Sequence record: MW218148.1
DNA length: 64,000 nt
Reading direction: 5' to 3' (one strand)
Positions 31,887 through 63,992 of this stretch are shown piece by piece. Position 1 is the first letter of the stretch; each line of letters begins with the position of its first letter. The notes beneath the pieces were generated by a model that worked only from the letters and a program-made list of their open reading frames with translations, was not told the DNA's origin and did not search any database. The position numbers and the translations under genes are program-made.

Positions 31887-32294
31887 ATGTTTCTAGCTCA
31901 GAATATCTATAACAAGCAACACATGTTAGAAGATATGGAAGCACTGGGTCAGACTATACAAAATCTTATTATAATGAAGAAAGGTACTTATCCTAATACC
32001 CCTAGTTTAGGAGTTGGAATAGAAGATTATTTATTTGAAATCTTAGATAACGAAACTATATCTGATATTACTAATAATATTAATACTCAGATAAGTCAGT
32101 TTATAGTATCAAATTCAGTTAATATAGACGTTAAAGTAATACAATTAAACAATAGTAATGCCAATTTAAATAGTCTAAAGATAGATGTTACATTAACGGA
32201 AACTAATGATAATTCTAAAAATCAAAGTTTCTCGTTTATATTTGCATCTAATTTATTAACTAAGAAAATGATTACTAAACTTGTTTTAGGATAA
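31887..32294 (+). CDS. Baseplate wedge protein, T4 gp25-like
   Basis: IQNLIIMKKGTYPNTPSLGVGIEDYLFE...I..QISQF, gp25/GPW pattern. Confidence 0.75.
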   Translation: MFLAQNIYNKQHMLEDMEALGQTIQNLIIMKKGTYPNTPSLGVGIEDYLFEILDNETISDITNNINTQISQFIVSNSVNIDVKVIQLNNSNANLNSLKIDVTLTETNDNSKNQSFSFIFASNLLTKKMITKLVLG

Positions 32295-32331: not shown

Positions 32332-33693
32332 ATGGTAAAAAAAGCAGATAACCAAGAACTAAACGATTTTATGTCAGATGAAGAATTAAAAGAAATCGAT
32401 GCAAGTCCTTCAGAGGAAAATGTTAAAAAAGAAACTCAAAATAAACAAGGTCAAAATAATAATAATAAAAAGAGAAATAACAACAACCGTAGAAGAAATA
32501 ACAACAAACAAAATCAAAATAATAAAAAATCAGCTATTCCTACACAAAGAAACAAAGAGGAAGTTAAGAAAGAAGAACCTAAGAAACAAGCTCCTAAAGA
32601 TACTTCTGAAATGACTCTTTCTGATTTTGAAGACTATCAAAAAGAAGAGGCTAAAAAAGGTAAAGAAAGAGAAGAATATTTAAAAGGTCTTGAACAAATT
32701 GGAAGTAATGAAAGATCAAATTTATTAAATAATATTAGTGTAGATTTAGATAATATTGAATTAATTTCTGATATTGATTATGATATTGATAAAGAAAATA
32801 CTAATTTTGTATTAAACAGTAAAGCAACTCATCAAGTTGTATTACCTCAATCTTCATATATTGCACATATGGAAAGTTTACGTAACCAAGAAATTCTTTC
32901 TATTGCAGAATCAATTGATGATGATTACAATGCAATGTTAAAACGTTACCAATTATATTTCCATAAAATGAATACGAATTCATTAGGTATTACTAACTTC
33001 CAAGATTTTGCTAAATTAACTTCAGTATACGATGTTAGTACTATTGAATATGGATTATATAATATCTCATTCCCAGGTGAAACTAAATTTGATATTCAAT
33101 GTGGATCATGTAAATCTAAATTAAAAGATGTTAAAATCTCTAATGATCAATTAATGTCATTTAAAGATGAAGAAGTATTTGAACATGTAACTAAAAATGT
33201 TAAAAATATCACTACTATTGAAGAAAGTAAAGAACACTCATTAATTTATAGTGAAAAACGTATAATCTTAGCTGACTCTAAAATTATCTTTGAAATTGTT
33301 ACACCTACTGTTGAAAAACACTTAAGTGTATTAGGTAGTATCCATACAGATGGTTTATCTGAAGAAGAGTCTGAAAGATTTAAACAAAATGCTACAGCTT
33401 TAATGCATGTTAAAAATGTATACATTCCTGACTTGAAATCACTTAAAGAAGAAGGTAAAGCTAAATATCGTATGCTACCTGAATCAAATATGAAGGATAA
33501 AATGAAAGTAATTGAAAATCTTTCTATCCGTGATGGACATCAGTTAACAGATGCTATATTTGATAGAGTTAATAAAAATGCTATTGAATACGCTATCAAA
33601 GGAGCTAAATGTCCTAAATGTGAAAACGATCTAGGAAAAATTGATATTGATATGAGTGAAATGCTTTTTCGGGAAGCGCTGCATTTGGTTTAG
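32332..33693 (+). CDS. Tail/baseplate hub assembly chaperone (T4 gp26-like), disordered N-terminus
   Basis: SFPGETKFDIQCGSCK and AKCPKCENDLGKIDIDMSEMLF Zn pairs; follows gp25; ends at a slippery CTTTTTC. Confidence 0.6.
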   Translation: MVKKADNQELNDFMSDEELKEIDASPSEENVKKETQNKQGQNNNNKKRNNNNRRRNNNKQNQNNKKSAIPTQRNKEEVKKEEPKKQAPKDTSEMTLSDFEDYQKEEAKKGKEREEYLKGLEQIGSNERSNLLNNISVDLDNIELISDIDYDIDKENTNFVLNSKATHQVVLPQSSYIAHMESLRNQEILSIAESIDDDYNAMLKRYQLYFHKMNTNSLGITNFQDFAKLTSVYDVSTIEYGLYNISFPGETKFDIQCGSCKSKLKDVKISNDQLMSFKDEEVFEHVTKNVKNITTIEESKEHSLIYSEKRIILADSKIIFEIVTPTVEKHLSVLGSIHTDGLSEEESERFKQNATALMHVKNVYIPDLKSLKEEGKAKYRMLPESNMKDKMKVIENLSIRDGHQLTDAIFDRVNKNAIEYAIKGAKCPKCENDLGKIDIDMSEMLFREALHLV

Positions 33694-33965
33694 TCACAAC
33701 CACGAACAGCAAGCAGTATAAAAAGAAGGTTTATGACGATGCAGCGTATATAGCATATCTGCTTGATTTATTTGAAGGACGTTTATCTTTTAATGAAATT
33801 CTTAATATGGAATTGAATATTCTTAACTCTATGGTTAGAGCTAAAGAAAAAGAAATGAAAAATAAACGTATGCAACAGAAAAAGATAGAATCTGCTCAAA
33901 GAAGGAATTTCGATAATGGAATGCCTAAAACTGAATTACCTAGACACTTAAATCCAGGTGGTTAA
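33660..33965 (+). CDS. Unlisted -1-frame extension (gp51/GT-like), probably reached by frameshift
   Basis: About 101 open codons in the -1 frame, YLLDLFEGRLSFNEILNMELNILNSMVRAKEKE..., with no start codon until 33807. Confidence 0.6.
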   Translation, partial: NAFSGSAAFGLVTTTNSKQYKKKVYDDAAYIAYLLDLFEGRLSFNEILNMELNILNSMVRAKEKEMKNKRMQQKKIESAQRRNFDNGMPKTELPRHLNPGG

Positions 33966-33997: not shown

Positions 33998-34291
33998 TTG
34001 GTTAATAACACTAAAGATAGTCAGAAGATCCTTCATATTTATGATTCTCTTGTTGAAGGTGATGAGAACCTAATATCATCTCTATGTCATTCAGAAAAAG
34101 GTTTACTTTTTGTAAACCTTTTGTTTGATGTAGATTATAAAGTTAAAGAAGGATTTTCTAAAAACTATAATGAATTTGATTACGTCATTTTAGAAACAGA
34201 AGATAAAGAAAAATTAAAAGAAAAAGTTTCATATATAAAAAATTTAAAAATTGAAGACAACAAAAATAGTATAAGAATTTCAATCGTATAA
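33998..34291 (+). CDS. Hypothetical protein
   Basis: 97-aa ORF with SD AAAGGAG. Confidence 0.65.
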   Translation: MVNNTKDSQKILHIYDSLVEGDENLISSLCHSEKGLLFVNLLFDVDYKVKEGFSKNYNEFDYVILETEDKEKLKEKVSYIKNLKIEDNKNSIRISIV

Positions 34292-58004: not shown

Positions 58005-61000
58005 TTGAGTATTAAAATAAATAACGAATTGTATTACAATCTAAGAGATAAAACAAGATTAAGCAGAGTAGAAAATACTCAAGAATTAGTTACTGGTAGT
58101 TTCTATACTTTCTATAATGACTTACTCTTAGAAATTAGATACAATAATAAGATTTATGTATATACAGGTTATTCAACTCAGGGAGAACCTGTTTTAGAAT
58201 TAGATTTCCTTAAAGCTGAATTAGATATAGATAACATAGAAGATGTATTTATGTATGATAATATACTTGTAATCATCAGTGAAAAAGGTTACTATAGATG
58301 TTTCATGGACCAGTTATCCGAGAATATAAATAATTCAAATATGGAAGCTGTATATAGTCATAATTTCTATAGATCTAGTGAAGACTTAAACTATAGACCT
58401 TACTCTTTATTTAATGATATGATTTGTATTAAAGACGCCAATGATAAATTGGTTATTAAGAGTATTAAAGATGATTCATATACTAAAACTATTGTATTTA
58501 ATAAAAATATTGAAGGATTCAGTTTCTTATATGAAGAAGGTTTAGCTCTTAGTTTTTATGGAGAACCTTATTACATTCGTGTGTATGATTTTGAAAAAGA
58601 AAAGTACACTCAGAATTTTAAAATAAATGAAAATATTAATGAATATGAGTATGATATTCAGCATCAAATAACTAGAATATTCAAATTTAAGAATACGTTA
58701 TACTATTCAACACGTTCAGGTAGAATTTATAAGAGTCAAATTTATAATAAATTAATTAACTCTATTTCATATAGATTTTATCAATCAGGGTCAGCTATTG
58801 ATTATATAAAATCATACGGTAATTATATTACATTCACAAATAGAAGTAATAATATTTTAATATATAATACTGACTATGACAGAAAAGAAATAGTTAAGAA
58901 TAATTACCTAGTAAAATCTCTAGCTATAAGTAATTTTATGATGGTTATTTCTCTTTATGATAGTATTGATGAAGATTATAAGAAAGAAATAGTTGAGACT
59001 GGAGTATATCCACCAGATGTTAAATTAAATCCGGTTAATAAATATGTAATGTATAATCCACCTAGCGTAGATGTACTAAAAGAGAAATTAGAATATAGAT
59101 TTGACGATCCTAATGATCCTCTAGTATATATAAATCTTAATGTAAAACTATCTGAGAATAAGCTAAATAACTTTGATGATAGTCAATATAGACTTAAGCT
59201 TAATATAGTACATTCTGATGATACGACTGTTATAGAAGAATCTGATGTTAAGATATATAAACAACAAGGTACAGTCAAAAATATGTATGTTAAAGTTGGA
59301 AGAAAATCTCAATGGGTTGATAATAATAAATTACTATCATTATTAGAAAATGGTGATTTACGTTATAGGTTTACTGTAGATAATATTGATAACTATGTAA
59401 CATTCTATAATACAGAATACCCAAGCATTAGTAATGAATTATACAGACACTTAACGGGAACAGAAGTAGTCTTAGATAGATCTCCAGAGAAGAGTCATTA
59501 TGATGCTATCTCAAAAGAATTAGATATTAAAGATATATTTAATGATGCTGAAGATGAAAAAGTTATTTCGTTATTGTCTAATTTAGTAAATGAAAAAGTT
59601 ATATATCCTTCATCTAATCTACGTATTGATTCTGAAGATATGTATTTAGATTACCCTGATTACGATCCAAGAAGATATATTGATTTTAGTAATGAGTATC
59701 CTGATGGACAATTGGATACTAATGTAATCAACTCAGACGTATACTTTAATGGCCTTAAATTATTTAAAAATGATTTACTTCAGAAAGATAATTTTGACGG
59801 TTCGGTTAACGTTTATTTAAATCATTTAGCTATGAAAAAATATATGAATCCTAAGAACTATGAATATACTATCCAAGATAGAAAATTATCTAAAACAGAC
59901 AGTTTTATTATTTCTAATAAATCTAGAAGTTTATATCAAACAGAAAAACTTATGATTAAACATACAGTTACTAATGATTATGAAAACCAAACATCATTAC
60001 TACCAACTAAAGGTATTTTATTACCTAATACTAGAGTTAATCAATTTAAGATTCAAAATATTAGAGTATATGTTAAAGTATATAATACTAGTGAAAATGG
60101 TAATGAATATTATCATAGACTAAATCCAAGAAACTTCAATCTTTGGATTGATAAAGAATATAATATGCTTAGAGTTGCGGTTTATGGCATACAGATTCCG
60201 GAAGGTTCTACATTAATGATTATGGATAATGGTTTAACTAATAATGTCATTCTATATGATAAACTTAATTACATTAAGCGTGATATTGATAGTTTACCTA
60301 TAGTTGAAGTTGGTCCTCAAGGAGAATTATTAACTGAATTAAGTAGAAGAACTGAAGATGTGGAAGTTATTGTAGATGGATTAACTTTAATACCTGGTCG
60401 AGATTTCCATGTAATGAATACACCTAACGATCCAGATATTCCTTCCTTAGTTGCTTTCAGAAATGTTATTCCTAATACAGCTAAAGTAGAAATTGCATTA
60501 TTAAATGAAAATTCTTCTGATGTTTATTACTTTAAACGTCCTGCTGTTGATACTACTAATGTATTTGTACTACCTGATGATAAACGCATTTTTACTAATA
60601 ATATCTATCAGAATGATCCTTATAAAGATATCAATCTATTAAAGAATTCTGATGAAGATGTTATAACTAAAGATAATGTAGTTAAGGAATATGAATTATT
60701 AGAACCTTTAGAGAAAAATACTGATTATGTATTGACTATGAGAGCTCAAATGCCTGTTGATATTGATTATCTTAATATAACTTCTAATGGAACTACTAAA
60801 AATATAGTTAGTATTCAATCAAGTTCATATGATTCAACTACTAAAACTTATCAGGTTAAATTCAAATTAGAAGATTTGGGTGATGGTCTTAATACGGGAA
60901 TAGTTATTAGGAAAACTCAAGAAAGCAGCAGAGATGTTAAAATTGATTGGGTTAAATTAAAGAAAGAATCTCATTCAACTAGACTATGGGAATCTTACTC

Positions 61001-63992
61001 TCAAGGACCTGAATTTAAAAACAAAGCTGTTAACTTTGAAGTGTTTGTTAATAATAAGAAAATTCCTAGTAACTATGTAACAGTATTAAATTCAAAAGCT
61101 ATTAAGATAAGTGAAATATCTGGTTATGCGTTAAATAATGTTATGATTAGATTTAACTTCTCTTATGATGAAGTTTTACAAAGAGTTATTGATAATTATA
61201 AATACAAGAATATTGATGTTAATGAAGATAGATACCATGATGACAGTATTTCTGATATTAAATCTCCTTTCGATGTACTAACTAGTAATAAGCAAGCTAA
61301 AACGTTAGGTAACTTATTATTAATACAATTGATCAATAGTGGTAAAAATATACTTGACTGTAACGTTGAAAATTTACCTATCGATGTTAATCTTAATACA
61401 AGTATGATTGAAAATAGTTATATTAGAAAGAATATCAATCTTGATATGAATAGAACTAATTTAATTAATACTATTAATAAGATTAGTGACATGGTTAATG
61501 AGATATTAGATGTTAATGATACTAACGATAACTTGATATTGAATAGTAATAATCCTTCATTATACATTTCAACAGGTAAAAATATATTGAACGACAGTCT
61601 GAATTCCAAAATGAGTCCTAACAATACAGGTTTTGGTTTAGCTACTCAAAACAAAGATCTGAGTTGGAGTATTGAAAGTGATCCTGATAAAGAAATTTCA
61701 GTATATTATTACTTAAAACATAAATCTTTCACTAATAGAACTTCTAGAGATATGGAATTAAATAAATGGTATACTATATCCATGGATATAATTACAGACA
61801 ATGATACTACGATTGAGATTGGAATAAAATCTAGAGGTATAATAAATTACTACTCACCTAATGAAAGTTACTTATATTATGATGTACAGAAAAATACTAG
61901 AAAAAGAATTCATTATATATTTAAATGGGTAGATGATCAAATATTAAATGATATACCATTTATTGTAAGAACATTTGGTAAAAATTCTAAGAATACAATT
62001 GTTACTTATGATAAAATGAAATTCTCAGAGGGTATCAATATTGATGATCCTTATACAATTGAAGAGGAAATAAAACATTACAGTGAATATCCTTTTTCTA
62101 AGAAAGACAAATATAACAGTGAATTTGAATTACGTTCTAATATCCGTGATATAAAACTTAAAAATAGTGAAATCTCCTTAGGTTTTGATTTAGATACTTC
62201 TTTATATGAACCAGATAGTATATATACATTATCTTTCTATTCTAGAAATAAAAATAAATCATACTTAAAATTCATTAATGAAAAGTTAGATATAAATGTT
62301 GATATTAGAAATGATGAATTTAAACGATATGTCAAATATGTTTATCTTTCTGATATAGATGATTTAACCAAGTCAATGAGAGAATTTGTGTTTAAATCTG
62401 ATGATAGTATTAATATGGATCTATTTGGATTTAAATTAGAAAGAGGGCTAAAAGCCACTAGATACAATCCTAACATCAAGGATTTACAAGGAAATGATTA
62501 TATAAGTAATGCTCTTAATGTAAACGTTGATAGTAATTCAAACTTGATAGAAAATAGTACTGAAACTTATGAACTTAAAGATGTTGATACTAGGTGTGTC
62601 AATCTATTAAATAATACGGATTACACTATAAATAACAACTCTAGTGCAACTCCACTATCAATGGTAGGAAAACTAGTACCAAATCAGACTTATACATTAT
62701 CATTTGACTTAAATTTAGTGAACGGTAGACCCAAAACTCAAAAACGTGTTGGTATAGAAATAAAAGTTACATTCACTGATGGTACTACTAAATTCTATGG
62801 TTCTTGGTTTAGATTTGAAGAAGAAGGAGGAGTAAACTTTAAAGGTAGAATTGAAGAAACGTTTACTGTATATTCTGAAAAAGTTCAATCTATAACTTAT
62901 GTAAAAGTATTTACAGACTTAATTGACTCTGATTTAGTTGAAATTTCTAGACCTCAGTTAGAAATTGGTAATAAAGCAACTAACTGGTCTCCTTCTTATG
63001 ACGATATTACTAATAAATATAGTAATTATATAAGTGATAAGAAAATAGGTTTAGATTTATCTAGTAAAAACTTAACAATAAACGAAGAAGAATATCCTAA
63101 TAGGAATAATTTTTCTTATCAAAGTTTAGTTCCAACTAATGAAATATTTAAAGATACTAATGAACCTATTTGGAAAATAGTTAAAGAAAATAACAGTACT
63201 CCTCCTATATCTTTCGTGAATAATTTGGGAGGAAATTCTATAACTGTAAAGAATAATGAATCTTACACATTTAGTATTTATGCTATGGTTGAAAATAATG
63301 ATAGTTCGTCATCCAATTTAATATGGTATGATATCGATGATAGAACTAGTTACTCCACTACTTTTGTAAATAAAGAAGGTATGAATAGATATTCAAGTAC
63401 ATTTACAAATACGTCAGGAGTTGATAAGCGAGTGATACCTTATTTCTATTCAGCTAAGAATACAGTTACTTACTTTAGTAGTCCTCAAATAGAAAAAGGT
63501 AAATTTATGACTTCATATAACTATAACTCTTATAGAAAAGATAAGAAATTTACTTTAGATTTACTAGAAGAGTTGAAAAATACCAATATGGAAATATCAA
63601 TTCCAACATACAATATAGATACTTACAATGTGGATAATGATAGTTTCTATACTTTCTCTATGGATGTAAAAATTAATAACATTGGAGATATATCTACTAA
63701 ATCTCTATATGGCGGTTATAAAGATAATCAAGGTAATTATACTTCATCTAAAAATGTTTTCTATATTCCTTTAGATAAGAACAAAACATCATTTAGAGCT
63801 TTCTTTATAATGTATATCAGAGATATTAATGAAATTGATTCATTTGTATTCCGTTCAGGTTATTCTAAAGAACAATCTATTAAGAATTCAATGACATTCA
63901 GTAAGTTTAAAATGGAGAAAGGTAATATTGCAACTCCTTACTCTAAACCAGCTAATAAAGAGAAAACTCTATTATTAGATCCAGAAATATAA
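58005..63992 (+). CDS. Giant tail/baseplate fibre protein with repeated carbohydrate-binding-like domains
   Basis: N-terminal beta-propeller-like region; repeated N(L/I)(L/I).NS ... YTLSF ... (K/Q)(L/I/M)E.G..AT.(Y/W).P units (CBM_4_9-like) typical of phage tail proteins. Confidence 0.7.
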   Translation: MSIKINNELYYNLRDKTRLSRVENTQELVTGSFYTFYNDLLLEIRYNNKIYVYTGYSTQGEPVLELDFLKAELDIDNIEDVFMYDNILVIISEKGYYRCFMDQLSENINNSNMEAVYSHNFYRSSEDLNYRPYSLFNDMICIKDANDKLVIKSIKDDSYTKTIVFNKNIEGFSFLYEEGLALSFYGEPYYIRVYDFEKEKYTQNFKINENINEYEYDIQHQITRIFKFKNTLYYSTRSGRIYKSQIYNKLINSISYRFYQSGSAIDYIKSYGNYITFTNRSNNILIYNTDYDRKEIVKNNYLVKSLAISNFMMVISLYDSIDEDYKKEIVETGVYPPDVKLNPVNKYVMYNPPSVDVLKEKLEYRFDDPNDPLVYINLNVKLSENKLNNFDDSQYRLKLNIVHSDDTTVIEESDVKIYKQQGTVKNMYVKVGRKSQWVDNNKLLSLLENGDLRYRFTVDNIDNYVTFYNTEYPSISNELYRHLTGTEVVLDRSPEKSHYDAISKELDIKDIFNDAEDEKVISLLSNLVNEKVIYPSSNLRIDSEDMYLDYPDYDPRRYIDFSNEYPDGQLDTNVINSDVYFNGLKLFKNDLLQKDNFDGSVNVYLNHLAMKKYMNPKNYEYTIQDRKLSKTDSFIISNKSRSLYQTEKLMIKHTVTNDYENQTSLLPTKGILLPNTRVNQFKIQNIRVYVKVYNTSENGNEYYHRLNPRNFNLWIDKEYNMLRVAVYGIQIPEGSTLMIMDNGLTNNVILYDKLNYIKRDIDSLPIVEVGPQGELLTELSRRTEDVEVIVDGLTLIPGRDFHVMNTPNDPDIPSLVAFRNVIPNTAKVEIALLNENSSDVYYFKRPAVDTTNVFVLPDDKRIFTNNIYQNDPYKDINLLKNSDEDVITKDNVVKEYELLEPLEKNTDYVLTMRAQMPVDIDYLNITSNGTTKNIVSIQSSSYDSTTKTYQVKFKLEDLGDGLNTGIVIRKTQESSRDVKIDWVKLKKESHSTRLWESYSQGPEFKNKAVNFEVFVNNKKIPSNYVTVLNSKAIKISEISGYALNNVMIRFNFSYDEVLQRVIDNYKYKNIDVNEDRYHDDSISDIKSPFDVLTSNKQAKTLGNLLLIQLINSGKNILDCNVENLPIDVNLNTSMIENSYIRKNINLDMNRTNLINTINKISDMVNEILDVNDTNDNLILNSNNPSLYISTGKNILNDSLNSKMSPNNTGFGLATQNKDLSWSIESDPDKEISVYYYLKHKSFTNRTSRDMELNKWYTISMDIITDNDTTIEIGIKSRGIINYYSPNESYLYYDVQKNTRKRIHYIFKWVDDQILNDIPFIVRTFGKNSKNTIVTYDKMKFSEGINIDDPYTIEEEIKHYSEYPFSKKDKYNSEFELRSNIRDIKLKNSEISLGFDLDTSLYEPDSIYTLSFYSRNKNKSYLKFINEKLDINVDIRNDEFKRYVKYVYLSDIDDLTKSMREFVFKSDDSINMDLFGFKLERGLKATRYNPNIKDLQGNDYISNALNVNVDSNSNLIENSTETYELKDVDTRCVNLLNNTDYTINNNSSATPLSMVGKLVPNQTYTLSFDLNLVNGRPKTQKRVGIEIKVTFTDGTTKFYGSWFRFEEEGGVNFKGRIEETFTVYSEKVQSITYVKVFTDLIDSDLVEISRPQLEIGNKATNWSPSYDDITNKYSNYISDKKIGLDLSSKNLTINEEEYPNRNNFSYQSLVPTNEIFKDTNEPIWKIVKENNSTPPISFVNNLGGNSITVKNNESYTFSIYAMVENNDSSSSNLIWYDIDDRTSYSTTFVNKEGMNRYSSTFTNTSGVDKRVIPYFYSAKNTVTYFSSPQIEKGKFMTSYNYNSYRKDKKFTLDLLEELKNTNMEISIPTYNIDTYNVDNDSFYTFSMDVKINNIGDISTKSLYGGYKDNQGNYTSSKNVFYIPLDKNKTSFRAFFIMYIRDINEIDSFVFRSGYSKEQSIKNSMTFSKFKMEKGNIATPYSKPANKEKTLLLDPEI

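Follow-up and report, generated by a model that had tools for sequence, protein, structure and literature searches.

Introduction

Programmed frameshifts in the tail assembly chaperone (TAC) genes of phages, namely the G/GT pair of lambda and the E/E+E' pair of P2, were reportedly described by Xu, Hendrix & Duda in 2004. The lambda pair is flanked by the tail tube gene on one side and the tape measure gene on the other and needs no strong RNA stimulator. Here, a similar arrangement is considered in Staphylococcus phage vB_StaM_SA1 (SA1; MW218148.1, 260.7 kb), an AR9/PBS1-like jumbo myovirus that matches the region at 100% identity and of which a stretch of 64,000 nucleotides (nt), referred to as the window, was studied. 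An earlier reading made from the letters of this stretch, the sequence-only reading, proposed that a gp26-like open reading frame (ORF) at 32332–33693 is extended by a programmed −1 frameshift. This core claim has survived all of the comparative tests that were run. Judged by its sequence features, the locus very probably contains an unannotated programmed frameshift that yields a short form (453 amino acids, aa) and a long form (544 aa) of a gp26/gp51-family chaperone.

In phage T4, gp26 and gp51 are hub assembly chaperones (PMC3004832). The two proteins are reportedly the short and long TAC forms of T4-like phages (Vladimirov, Gautam & Davidson 2022, Virology 566:9). Citing that study, PMC10885494 describes short and long TAC forms as separate genes of T4-like phages, and PMC12846349 mentions poly-T −1 signals in the TAC-N genes of T4-like phages. 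In the Vandenendeviridae and Andersonviridae, a conserved GTTTTT −1 site is found in TAC genes at a locus just upstream of the tape measure gene (PMC12846349).

As interpreted here, the SA1 locus shares with the lambda and P2 systems an N-terminal body common to both products, a second ORF with no independent start, a −1 shift close to where the first ORF ends, an arrangement that has outlasted sequence similarity, and occasional +1 lineages. It differs in that the protein has another size and family affiliation, slippage would occur on a minimal U_UUY in place of a phased heptamer of the G_GGA_AAG kind, and the gene stands beside gp25-like and GroEL genes. The resemblance to the Vandenendeviridae and Andersonviridae includes a poly-T run at the 3' end of TAC-N, a downstream piece that is routinely mis-annotated as hypothetical, and a case argued from an uninterrupted −1 frame over many genomes (PMC12846349); however, that is another phage group and the likeness considered here is one of site.

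Results

Two reading frames and a proposed shift site

The ORF at 32332–33693 (+ strand, 0 frame) encodes the 453-aa TAC-N or gp26-like protein of the short form and matches phrog_18873 with an E value of 2e-73. Its 3' end reads ATG CTT TTT CGG GAA GCG CTG CAT TTG GTT TAG, codon for codon as had been given in the sequence-only reading, with the TAG stop at 33691–33693. A TGA at 33657–33659, two codons upstream of the slip site, closes the −1 frame, so a shift is possible only within 33660–33693. Beyond this stop, the −1 frame is open for 101 codons (33660–33962) and terminates with a TAA at 33963–33965. By an estimate made for this study, an open run of this length has a chance of approximately 2e-4 given 27% GC and stops at approximately 8% of triplets. 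The first ATG, GTG or TTG in the −1 frame is at 33807 and there is none within 33660–33806; the opening at 33660, the length and the lack of an earlier start had all been anticipated. The overlap of the extension frame with the end of the large ORF is 34 nt in SA1.

The shift site is CTT TTT CGG in the 0 frame (33664–33672, + strand), with T_TTY at the homologous Leu-Phe position in 20 lineages. A slippery C-TTT-TTC had been proposed earlier. While the bases CTTTTTC are indeed present at 33664–33670, they do not form an X_XXY_YYZ heptamer in the right phase, since the 0-frame codons are CTT (33664–33666), TTT (33667–33669) and CGG, and TTT TTC are codons of the +1 frame. Tandem re-pairing would require the P-site CUU to pair with GCU. 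As the proposed heptamer is out of phase, only a single slip of tRNA-Phe fits. Such a slip would give a junction with EMLF followed directly by SGSAAFG, which is the peptide that had been predicted in the sequence-only reading. The A-site codon CGG is very rare, occurring twice among 18,472 window codons.

The −1 frame extension (33669–33965, + strand) comprises 98 codons and a stop, and is predicted to add a Gly/Ser/Ala-rich linker followed by a three-helix domain that contains the invariant motif LF-x-G. This makes a predicted long form of 446 + 98 = 544 aa. In all database records, three separate hypothetical proteins are annotated across the region. In SA1, the stretch at 33694–33806 (+ strand) is annotated as intergenic while coding in the −1 frame, and 33807–33965 (+ strand) is annotated as a 52-aa hypothetical protein (ORF237, QPI17155.1) that corresponds to the C-terminal portion of the extension.

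Selection on the −1 frame

The proportions of nonsynonymous and synonymous differences (pN/pS) were obtained for 33696–33806 from codon alignments of SA1 with phages LY01, S6, PB50 and three metagenomic relatives (L022–L024). In the −1 frame, pN/pS was 0.15–0.44 (pS up to 0.98) with no stops. In the 0 frame it was 0.75–1.24 and in the +1 frame 1.8–7.3, with stops present in both. The stretch is under purifying selection in the −1 frame only. The most conserved motif of the entire extension, LLDLFEG with its invariant F-x-G, precedes the annotated ATG at 33807.

Within the same −1 coding stretch, a 6-codon ORF in the 0 frame (33733–33753, + strand; ATG ACG ATG CAG CGT ATA TAG) is preceded by AAGAAGG. 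It is probably fortuitous.

Conservation of the arrangement

Nine further Staphylococcus jumbo phages match the region at 78–85% DNA identity, and tblastn searches with the 453-aa protein identified homologs in Bacillus phages AR9, PBS1, BpSp, Goe21 and Internexus, Listeria phage LPJP1 and Yersinia phage phiR1-37. The junction was read in 22 lineages, including metagenomic ones, and the slip-site codons were tabulated for 17 of the −1 sites. A −1 shift is needed in 20 of the 22 (SA1, LY01, S6, PB50, L022–L025, AR9, BpSp, L009, phiR1-37, L012, L013, L015, L017, L029, L030, L034 and L035). These 20 cover the Staphylococcus phages, Bacillus phages AR9/PBS1/BpSp, Yersinia phage phiR1-37 and their metagenomic relatives, with identities down to approximately 22%. 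Comparison of the sequences strongly supports the arrangement, which is conserved throughout the AR9-, phiR1-37- and Staphylococcus-type jumbo phages.

The remaining two lineages need a +1 shift. In the metagenomic lineage L019 (1794–2051) the site is CTC TTT TTT CGA, and in L020/L021 (L020:3373–3648), identical in two metagenomes, it is CTT TAA T with GGAGGA located 7 nt upstream. The latter resembles the +1 site of prfB (RF2), CUU UGA C. The SA1 site differs from prfB in its −1 direction and in lacking a correctly spaced stimulator of the Shine-Dalgarno (SD) type. With CGG, a very rare codon, in its A site, SA1 is reminiscent of hungry-codon shifts, as is L019 with its rare CGA. Since some lineages require −1 and others +1, it is the fusion that is conserved and not the frame.

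Conservation of the T run and of the overlap in relatives had been suggested as a check on the sequence-only reading, and both were found. The extension frame and the end of the large ORF share 28–76 nt, an overlap seen in all 22 lineages, and T_TTY is present in the 0 frame at an invariant Leu-Phe of the large protein in 20/20 lineages that need a −1 shift. In most of these, a stop 2–5 codons before the T run closes the shifted frame, leaving a narrow window for the shift. CTT is the sole leucine codon that places a T before the phenylalanine codon. Of the 17 tabulated −1 sites, 16 have CTT before Phe and one, that of L017, has ACT (Thr), whereas leucine codon use in the window as a whole is 16% for CTT and 65% for TTA. 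The run is T5 in most lineages, T4 in PB50 and L022, T3 in L017, and T8 in BpSp, L025 and L034. A phased U_UUU_UUY occurs only in BpSp, L025, L029/L034 and L030.

A start for the extension

A canonical start upstream of the conserved motif is absent in 11–12 of the 20 −1 lineages, and in-frame ATG or TTG codons in this position occur in a few relatives (L024, L009 and L013). An independent start with an SD sequence in homologs had been named as evidence that would count against a frameshift. No SD sequence precedes a usable candidate start of the extension in the 20 lineages; the sole candidate with an SD sequence is an ATG in L035 that lies within the conserved motif, four residues before the invariant Phe. 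AR9 gp229 (L005:2475–2675, NC_031039.1) is annotated with a CTG start codon, a sign that the annotators found no normal start.

A profile of the extension was searched against 1.84 billion proteins and matched 240 cluster representatives, the best 150 of which were listed. Of these 150, 149 are short called ORFs (41–145 aa). Among 142 representatives with a locatable motif, the called starts are scattered 3–70 residues before the invariant Phe. With the exception of one protein from a draft contig that was set aside, no full-length in-frame fusion was found among the best 150 of the 240 matches, which argues that both forms are kept.

The protein that was set aside, P0021 on L028, is the single fused match and comes from a bacterial draft assembly (GCA_003052465.1, contig QANM01000070.1) that is 96.8% identical to AR9. 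The fusion results from a 1-nt insertion located 12 nt upstream of the T run, and a second single-base insertion breaks the N-terminus of the same gene. Given the second indel and the draft state of the assembly, it was not taken as proof of a functional fusion. The indels are probably assembly errors, or possibly a real variant.

Search for stimulators of the shift

A stem-loop had been proposed downstream of the slip site (33678–33710, + strand), with GCTG at 33678–33681 pairing with CAGC at 33707–33710 and enclosing TGGTT/AACCA. The pairing is present and folds at −9.3 kcal/mol; however, 74 of 200 shuffled sequences folded as well (z = −0.34) and the stem-loop is not conserved, so that its role as a stimulator was not upheld. 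A stronger 9-bp long-range stem (33676–33684 with 33739–33747) with a 6-nt spacer was also considered and rejected, as it is broken in PB50 and L022. The z-scores of the SA1 folds in these structure tests were −0.34 and −0.78. RNAalifold identified no conserved structure downstream of the slip site, and a search of Rfam returned no match at the site. The canonical cassette for −1 programmed ribosomal frameshifting, consisting of a phased heptamer together with a structure or SD sequence, is not present in SA1.

The codon that follows the slip site is CGG in SA1, LY01 and S6, AGG in L022, CGC in L024 and a rare CGA in L019. It is reasonable to consider slow A-site decoding as a stimulator in these lineages, with the caveat that the overlap codes in two frames, which confounds the choice of codon here.

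Protein family and modeled structure

The 453-aa protein consists of a low-complexity N/K/Q-rich N-terminus at approximately residues 30–125 and a conserved domain from approximately residue 130 to 446. The N-terminal stretch (window 32420–32700) differs greatly in length from one Staphylococcus phage to another and is missing in the Bacillus and T4-type homologs. Two Cys knuckles were identified in an alignment of 17 sequences. The first, C257-x-x-C260 (TGT GGA TCA TGT; 33100–33111, + strand), is invariant and aligns with C82/C84 of T4 gp26. In the second, C427-P-K-C430 (33610–33621, + strand), C430 is invariant and C427 is conserved in at least 90% of sequences; it aligns with the CPEC of T4 gp26 (C187/C190). 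The Leu-Phe of the slip site follows 15–16 residues after this second knuckle.

A Pfam scan of the SA1 protein gave no match to PF12322 (T4_baseplate) at the gathering score of 24.5 bits. The best score in the family belongs to phiR1-37 g241 (13–14 bits, E 0.007–0.037), and this chaperone homolog is the sole PF12322 signal in the entire phiR1-37 genome. The products of T4 gene 26 (L027:3803–4429) and gene 51 (L027:4480–5229) both match the full length of PF12322 and, on the basis of sequence, are paralogs. When the family alignment was compared by HHalign with a profile of five gp26/gp51 sequences, a match was obtained with a probability of 85.9% (E 5.2e-6, 134 columns) in which residues 238–433 are collinear with gp26 residues 62–193 over both Cys knuckles. 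Weaker matches of the main domain were obtained with single sequences (gp26 15%, gp51 13%) and with a two-sequence profile (6%). The ESM Atlas model of the exact SA1 protein superimposes on that of a cluster that is 84% PF12322 with template modeling (TM) scores of 0.68 by query and 0.84 by target over 259 residues, and an Atlas feature search also reaches clusters bearing PF12322. From these profile and structure-model comparisons, the large ORF belongs to the T4 gp26/gp51 (PF12322) superfamily of hub and tail assembly chaperones, and the likeness to gp26 that had been noted earlier is supported.

The extension was modeled by AlphaFold from an alignment of 14 sequences (predicted local distance difference test, pLDDT = 78). 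Three helices are predicted at residues 15–35, 42–47 and 50–84, and the Gly/Ser/Ala linker is disordered. A sequence search of the PDB identified no solved relatives. The proposed resemblance of the extension to gp51 could not be demonstrated by sequence. HHalign probabilities were 0.2% against T4 gp51 and 1% against a three-sequence profile of T4-type extensions, the latter over a match of eight residues only, and no similarity to T4 gp26 was detected.

Comparison with T4-type phages

The SA1 and T4 proteins are alike in fold and profile, in their two Cys knuckles, in having a gp25 gene as a neighbor, and in a hydrophobic-Phe pair located 15–16 residues after the CPxC knuckle. In contrast, the SA1 protein is twice as long, with approximately 125 additional low-complexity residues at the N-terminus and insertions between the knuckles, and it falls under the Pfam cut-off. 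T4 has no slippery run, with Phe-Phe encoded in gene 26 as TTC TTT, and its long form is the separate paralog gp51, to whose tail no homology of the SA1 extension is demonstrable by sequence.

In the T4-type relatives Cronobacter phage LPCS28 and Rhizobium phage LG08, the gp26-like genes end with GAT TTT TTC. The T run is located 15 residues after the CPxC knuckle, a spacing like that of the SA1 Leu-Phe, and the −1 frame is open. The −1 extension of these phages aligns lengthwise with the C-terminal tail (50 residues) of T4 gp51. Thus, the earlier picture in which T4 encodes gp26 and gp51 separately and related lineages keep the frameshift holds for the family.

Neighboring genes

Upstream, the chaperone ORF adjoins a gp25-like baseplate wedge subunit gene (31887–32294, + strand) that matches PHROG 261/43 (baseplate wedge subunit, E 5e-13) and, weakly, Pfam GPW_gp25, and is so annotated in MW218148.1. 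Downstream, the extension is followed by a 97-aa ORF and then the GroEL gene. The 97-aa ORF (33998–34291, + strand) has a TTG start and matches neither PHROG nor Pfam. In AR9 (gp228), BpSp (gp284), L022–L025 and L030, a small ORF is likewise located at this position, but in phiR1-37 a terminator is found there. The 97-aa ORF may be part of the same assembly module. Elsewhere, an ORF of at least 1995 aa (58005–63992, + strand) runs off the end of the window. It has no PHROG match at E 1e-5 and is a candidate for a very large virion or tape-measure-like protein of this phage group.

Discussion

A proposed mechanism

According to the proposed mechanism, most ribosomes would stop at the TAG at 33691–33693 and release the 453-aa short form. 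A fraction would slip by −1 as tRNA-Phe on the UUU at 33667–33669, in the context CUU_UUU, re-pairs with the UUU at 33666–33668, making UCG (33669–33671) the next codon. This slip is probably aided by the slow reading of CGG, a very rare codon, in the A site. The shifted ribosomes would then translate the Gly/Ser/Ala linker and the small three-helix domain as far as the TAA at 33963–33965 to give the 544-aa long form, for which the predicted tryptic junction peptide is IDIDMSEMLFSGSAAFGLVTTTNSK. The two forms would share the chaperone body and, by analogy to lambda G/GT and T4 gp26/gp51, the additional domain of the minor long form may provide a link to another tail component. A low and fixed ratio of long to short form would be the expectation from lambda G/GT.

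Several observations weigh against this interpretation. A conserved stimulator was not found: the downstream fold has a z-score of +0.73 in SA1 and a mean of −0.94 over 17 lineages, approaching −2 in a few (L023, AR9, phiR1-37 and L015). An upstream SD-like element is absent in 15 of 17 lineages and none is correctly spaced in SA1, and a rare A-site codon is not universal (AAG in PB50, CAT in AR9). NNT_TTY is frequent in frame, with 237 sites in the 18,472 window codons; the motif alone is therefore insufficient for an efficient site, and something must set the SA1 site apart. No tape-measure-like PHROG match was found among the scanned large ORFs of the window, and the SA1 gene is not adjacent to a tape measure gene as in the described systems. 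Finally, ORF237 was not detected with liquid chromatography-tandem mass spectrometry (LC-MS/MS; PMC9096886, Table S2).

The same LC-MS/MS analysis did find the large ORF, as SA1 ORF236, with four peptides and an exponentially modified protein abundance index (emPAI) of 0.28 (PMC9096886, Table S2). Since the ORF table of that study lists the 52-aa ORF only, the database that was searched presumably did not contain the longer −1 product. The virion proteome of BpSp lists gp287, which is gp25-like, and not gp286 or gp285 (PMC4870245). In the annotation of phiR1-37, g239 and g240 are flagged as structural, and g241 and g242 are not. This pattern fits a low-abundance or non-virion assembly factor. 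The proteome supplement of UFV_DC4 has no entry for the homolog.

Alternatives to a ribosomal shift

The two frames might instead be fused in some mRNAs by transcriptional slippage, in which a host or phage multisubunit RNA polymerase adds one U in the T run. The site is a homopolymer that reaches T8 in BpSp, L025 and L034, and the −1 and +1 lineages could mirror insertion and deletion of a U, respectively. Productive slippage by bacterial and T7 polymerases is associated with runs of approximately eight or more, however, and the T5 run of most lineages, T4 of PB50 and L022 and T3 of L017 fall far under this length. Moreover, the CTT TAA T of L020/L021 contains no run at all, yet it is a classical ribosomal +1 site. 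A ribosomal shift would explain both the −1 and +1 geometries, the T3–T5 runs and CTT TAA T together; transcriptional slippage fails on the short runs and on the stop-codon site, and is considered quite unlikely. Another alternative is that of two separate genes, as annotated in all database records, with the extension translated alone, beginning either at the ATG at 33807 or, close to the upstream stop, at a non-canonical start or by reinitiation. The in-frame ATG or TTG codons upstream of the motif in L024, L009 and L013 would agree with this arrangement. Against it, coding selection begins well upstream of 33807 and the LLDLFEG motif precedes that ATG; SA1 has no canonical start in 33660–33806, nor do more than half of the −1 lineages upstream of the motif; and no usable candidate has an SD sequence, the one such ATG of L035 being located within the conserved motif. 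In addition, the shifted frame always extends back over the end of the large ORF to the T run, and no promoter-like site was found in the gap. Two independently translated genes are thus very unlikely.

It might also be argued that the extension is a relic, a formerly in-frame C-terminal domain that became detached through an old indel and has ceased to be produced, or that the frames are separated by homopolymer sequencing errors. The fused frames of the AR9-like draft contig would be in keeping with either notion, but the second indel in the same gene resembles poor assembly. More than 20 genomes and contigs that were sequenced independently have an identical frame arrangement, and strong purifying selection on the extension persists down to 18–33% identity. 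A relic or a sequencing error is extremely improbable. The programmed ribosomal frameshift is retained as the preferred explanation of the locus.

Implications for jumbo phages and the chaperone family

Frameshifting of this kind is already known for phage tail chaperones; its occurrence in the AR9/phiR1-37/Staphylococcus jumbo group has not been annotated before. With a programmed frameshift, one recoded gene would be annotated in at least 21 public genomes of the AR9/PBS1, phiR1-37 and Staphylococcus types as an "intergenic" gap plus a small ORF that is spurious, and approximately 240 metagenome protein clusters would be fragments of the extension. To specialists, the locus is of interest for its minimal, out-of-phase slip site, for having no conserved stimulator, for its rare A-site codon and for the sister lineages that require +1. 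A minimal U_UUY site with neither a heptamer nor a conserved structure, together with these +1 lineages, offers a natural series for the study of slipperiness on short runs.

The location of the shift point at the same protein position in T4-type and jumbo phages argues for a frameshift that long predates the T4 gene duplication. A far broader proposal is doubtful and is offered tentatively: recoding at one homologous position, 15–16 residues after the CPxC knuckle, may be of ancient origin and common to the whole PF12322 family, in T4-type and AR9-type phages alike. In the AR9 type, the efficiency of a one-tRNA U_UUY slip might depend on how slowly the codon after it is decoded (for the Staphylococcus clade CGG, AGG and CGC; for lineages that need +1, CGA or a stop), with the long/short ratio and tail/hub assembly tuned by the tRNA supply of host or phage.

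The T4-like picture of short and long forms with poly-T slip sites reaches a distant lineage of jumbo phages. A conserved jumbo-phage "hypothetical protein" is now placed in the gp26/gp51 chaperone family, which provides a handle on how these phages build their tails and baseplates.

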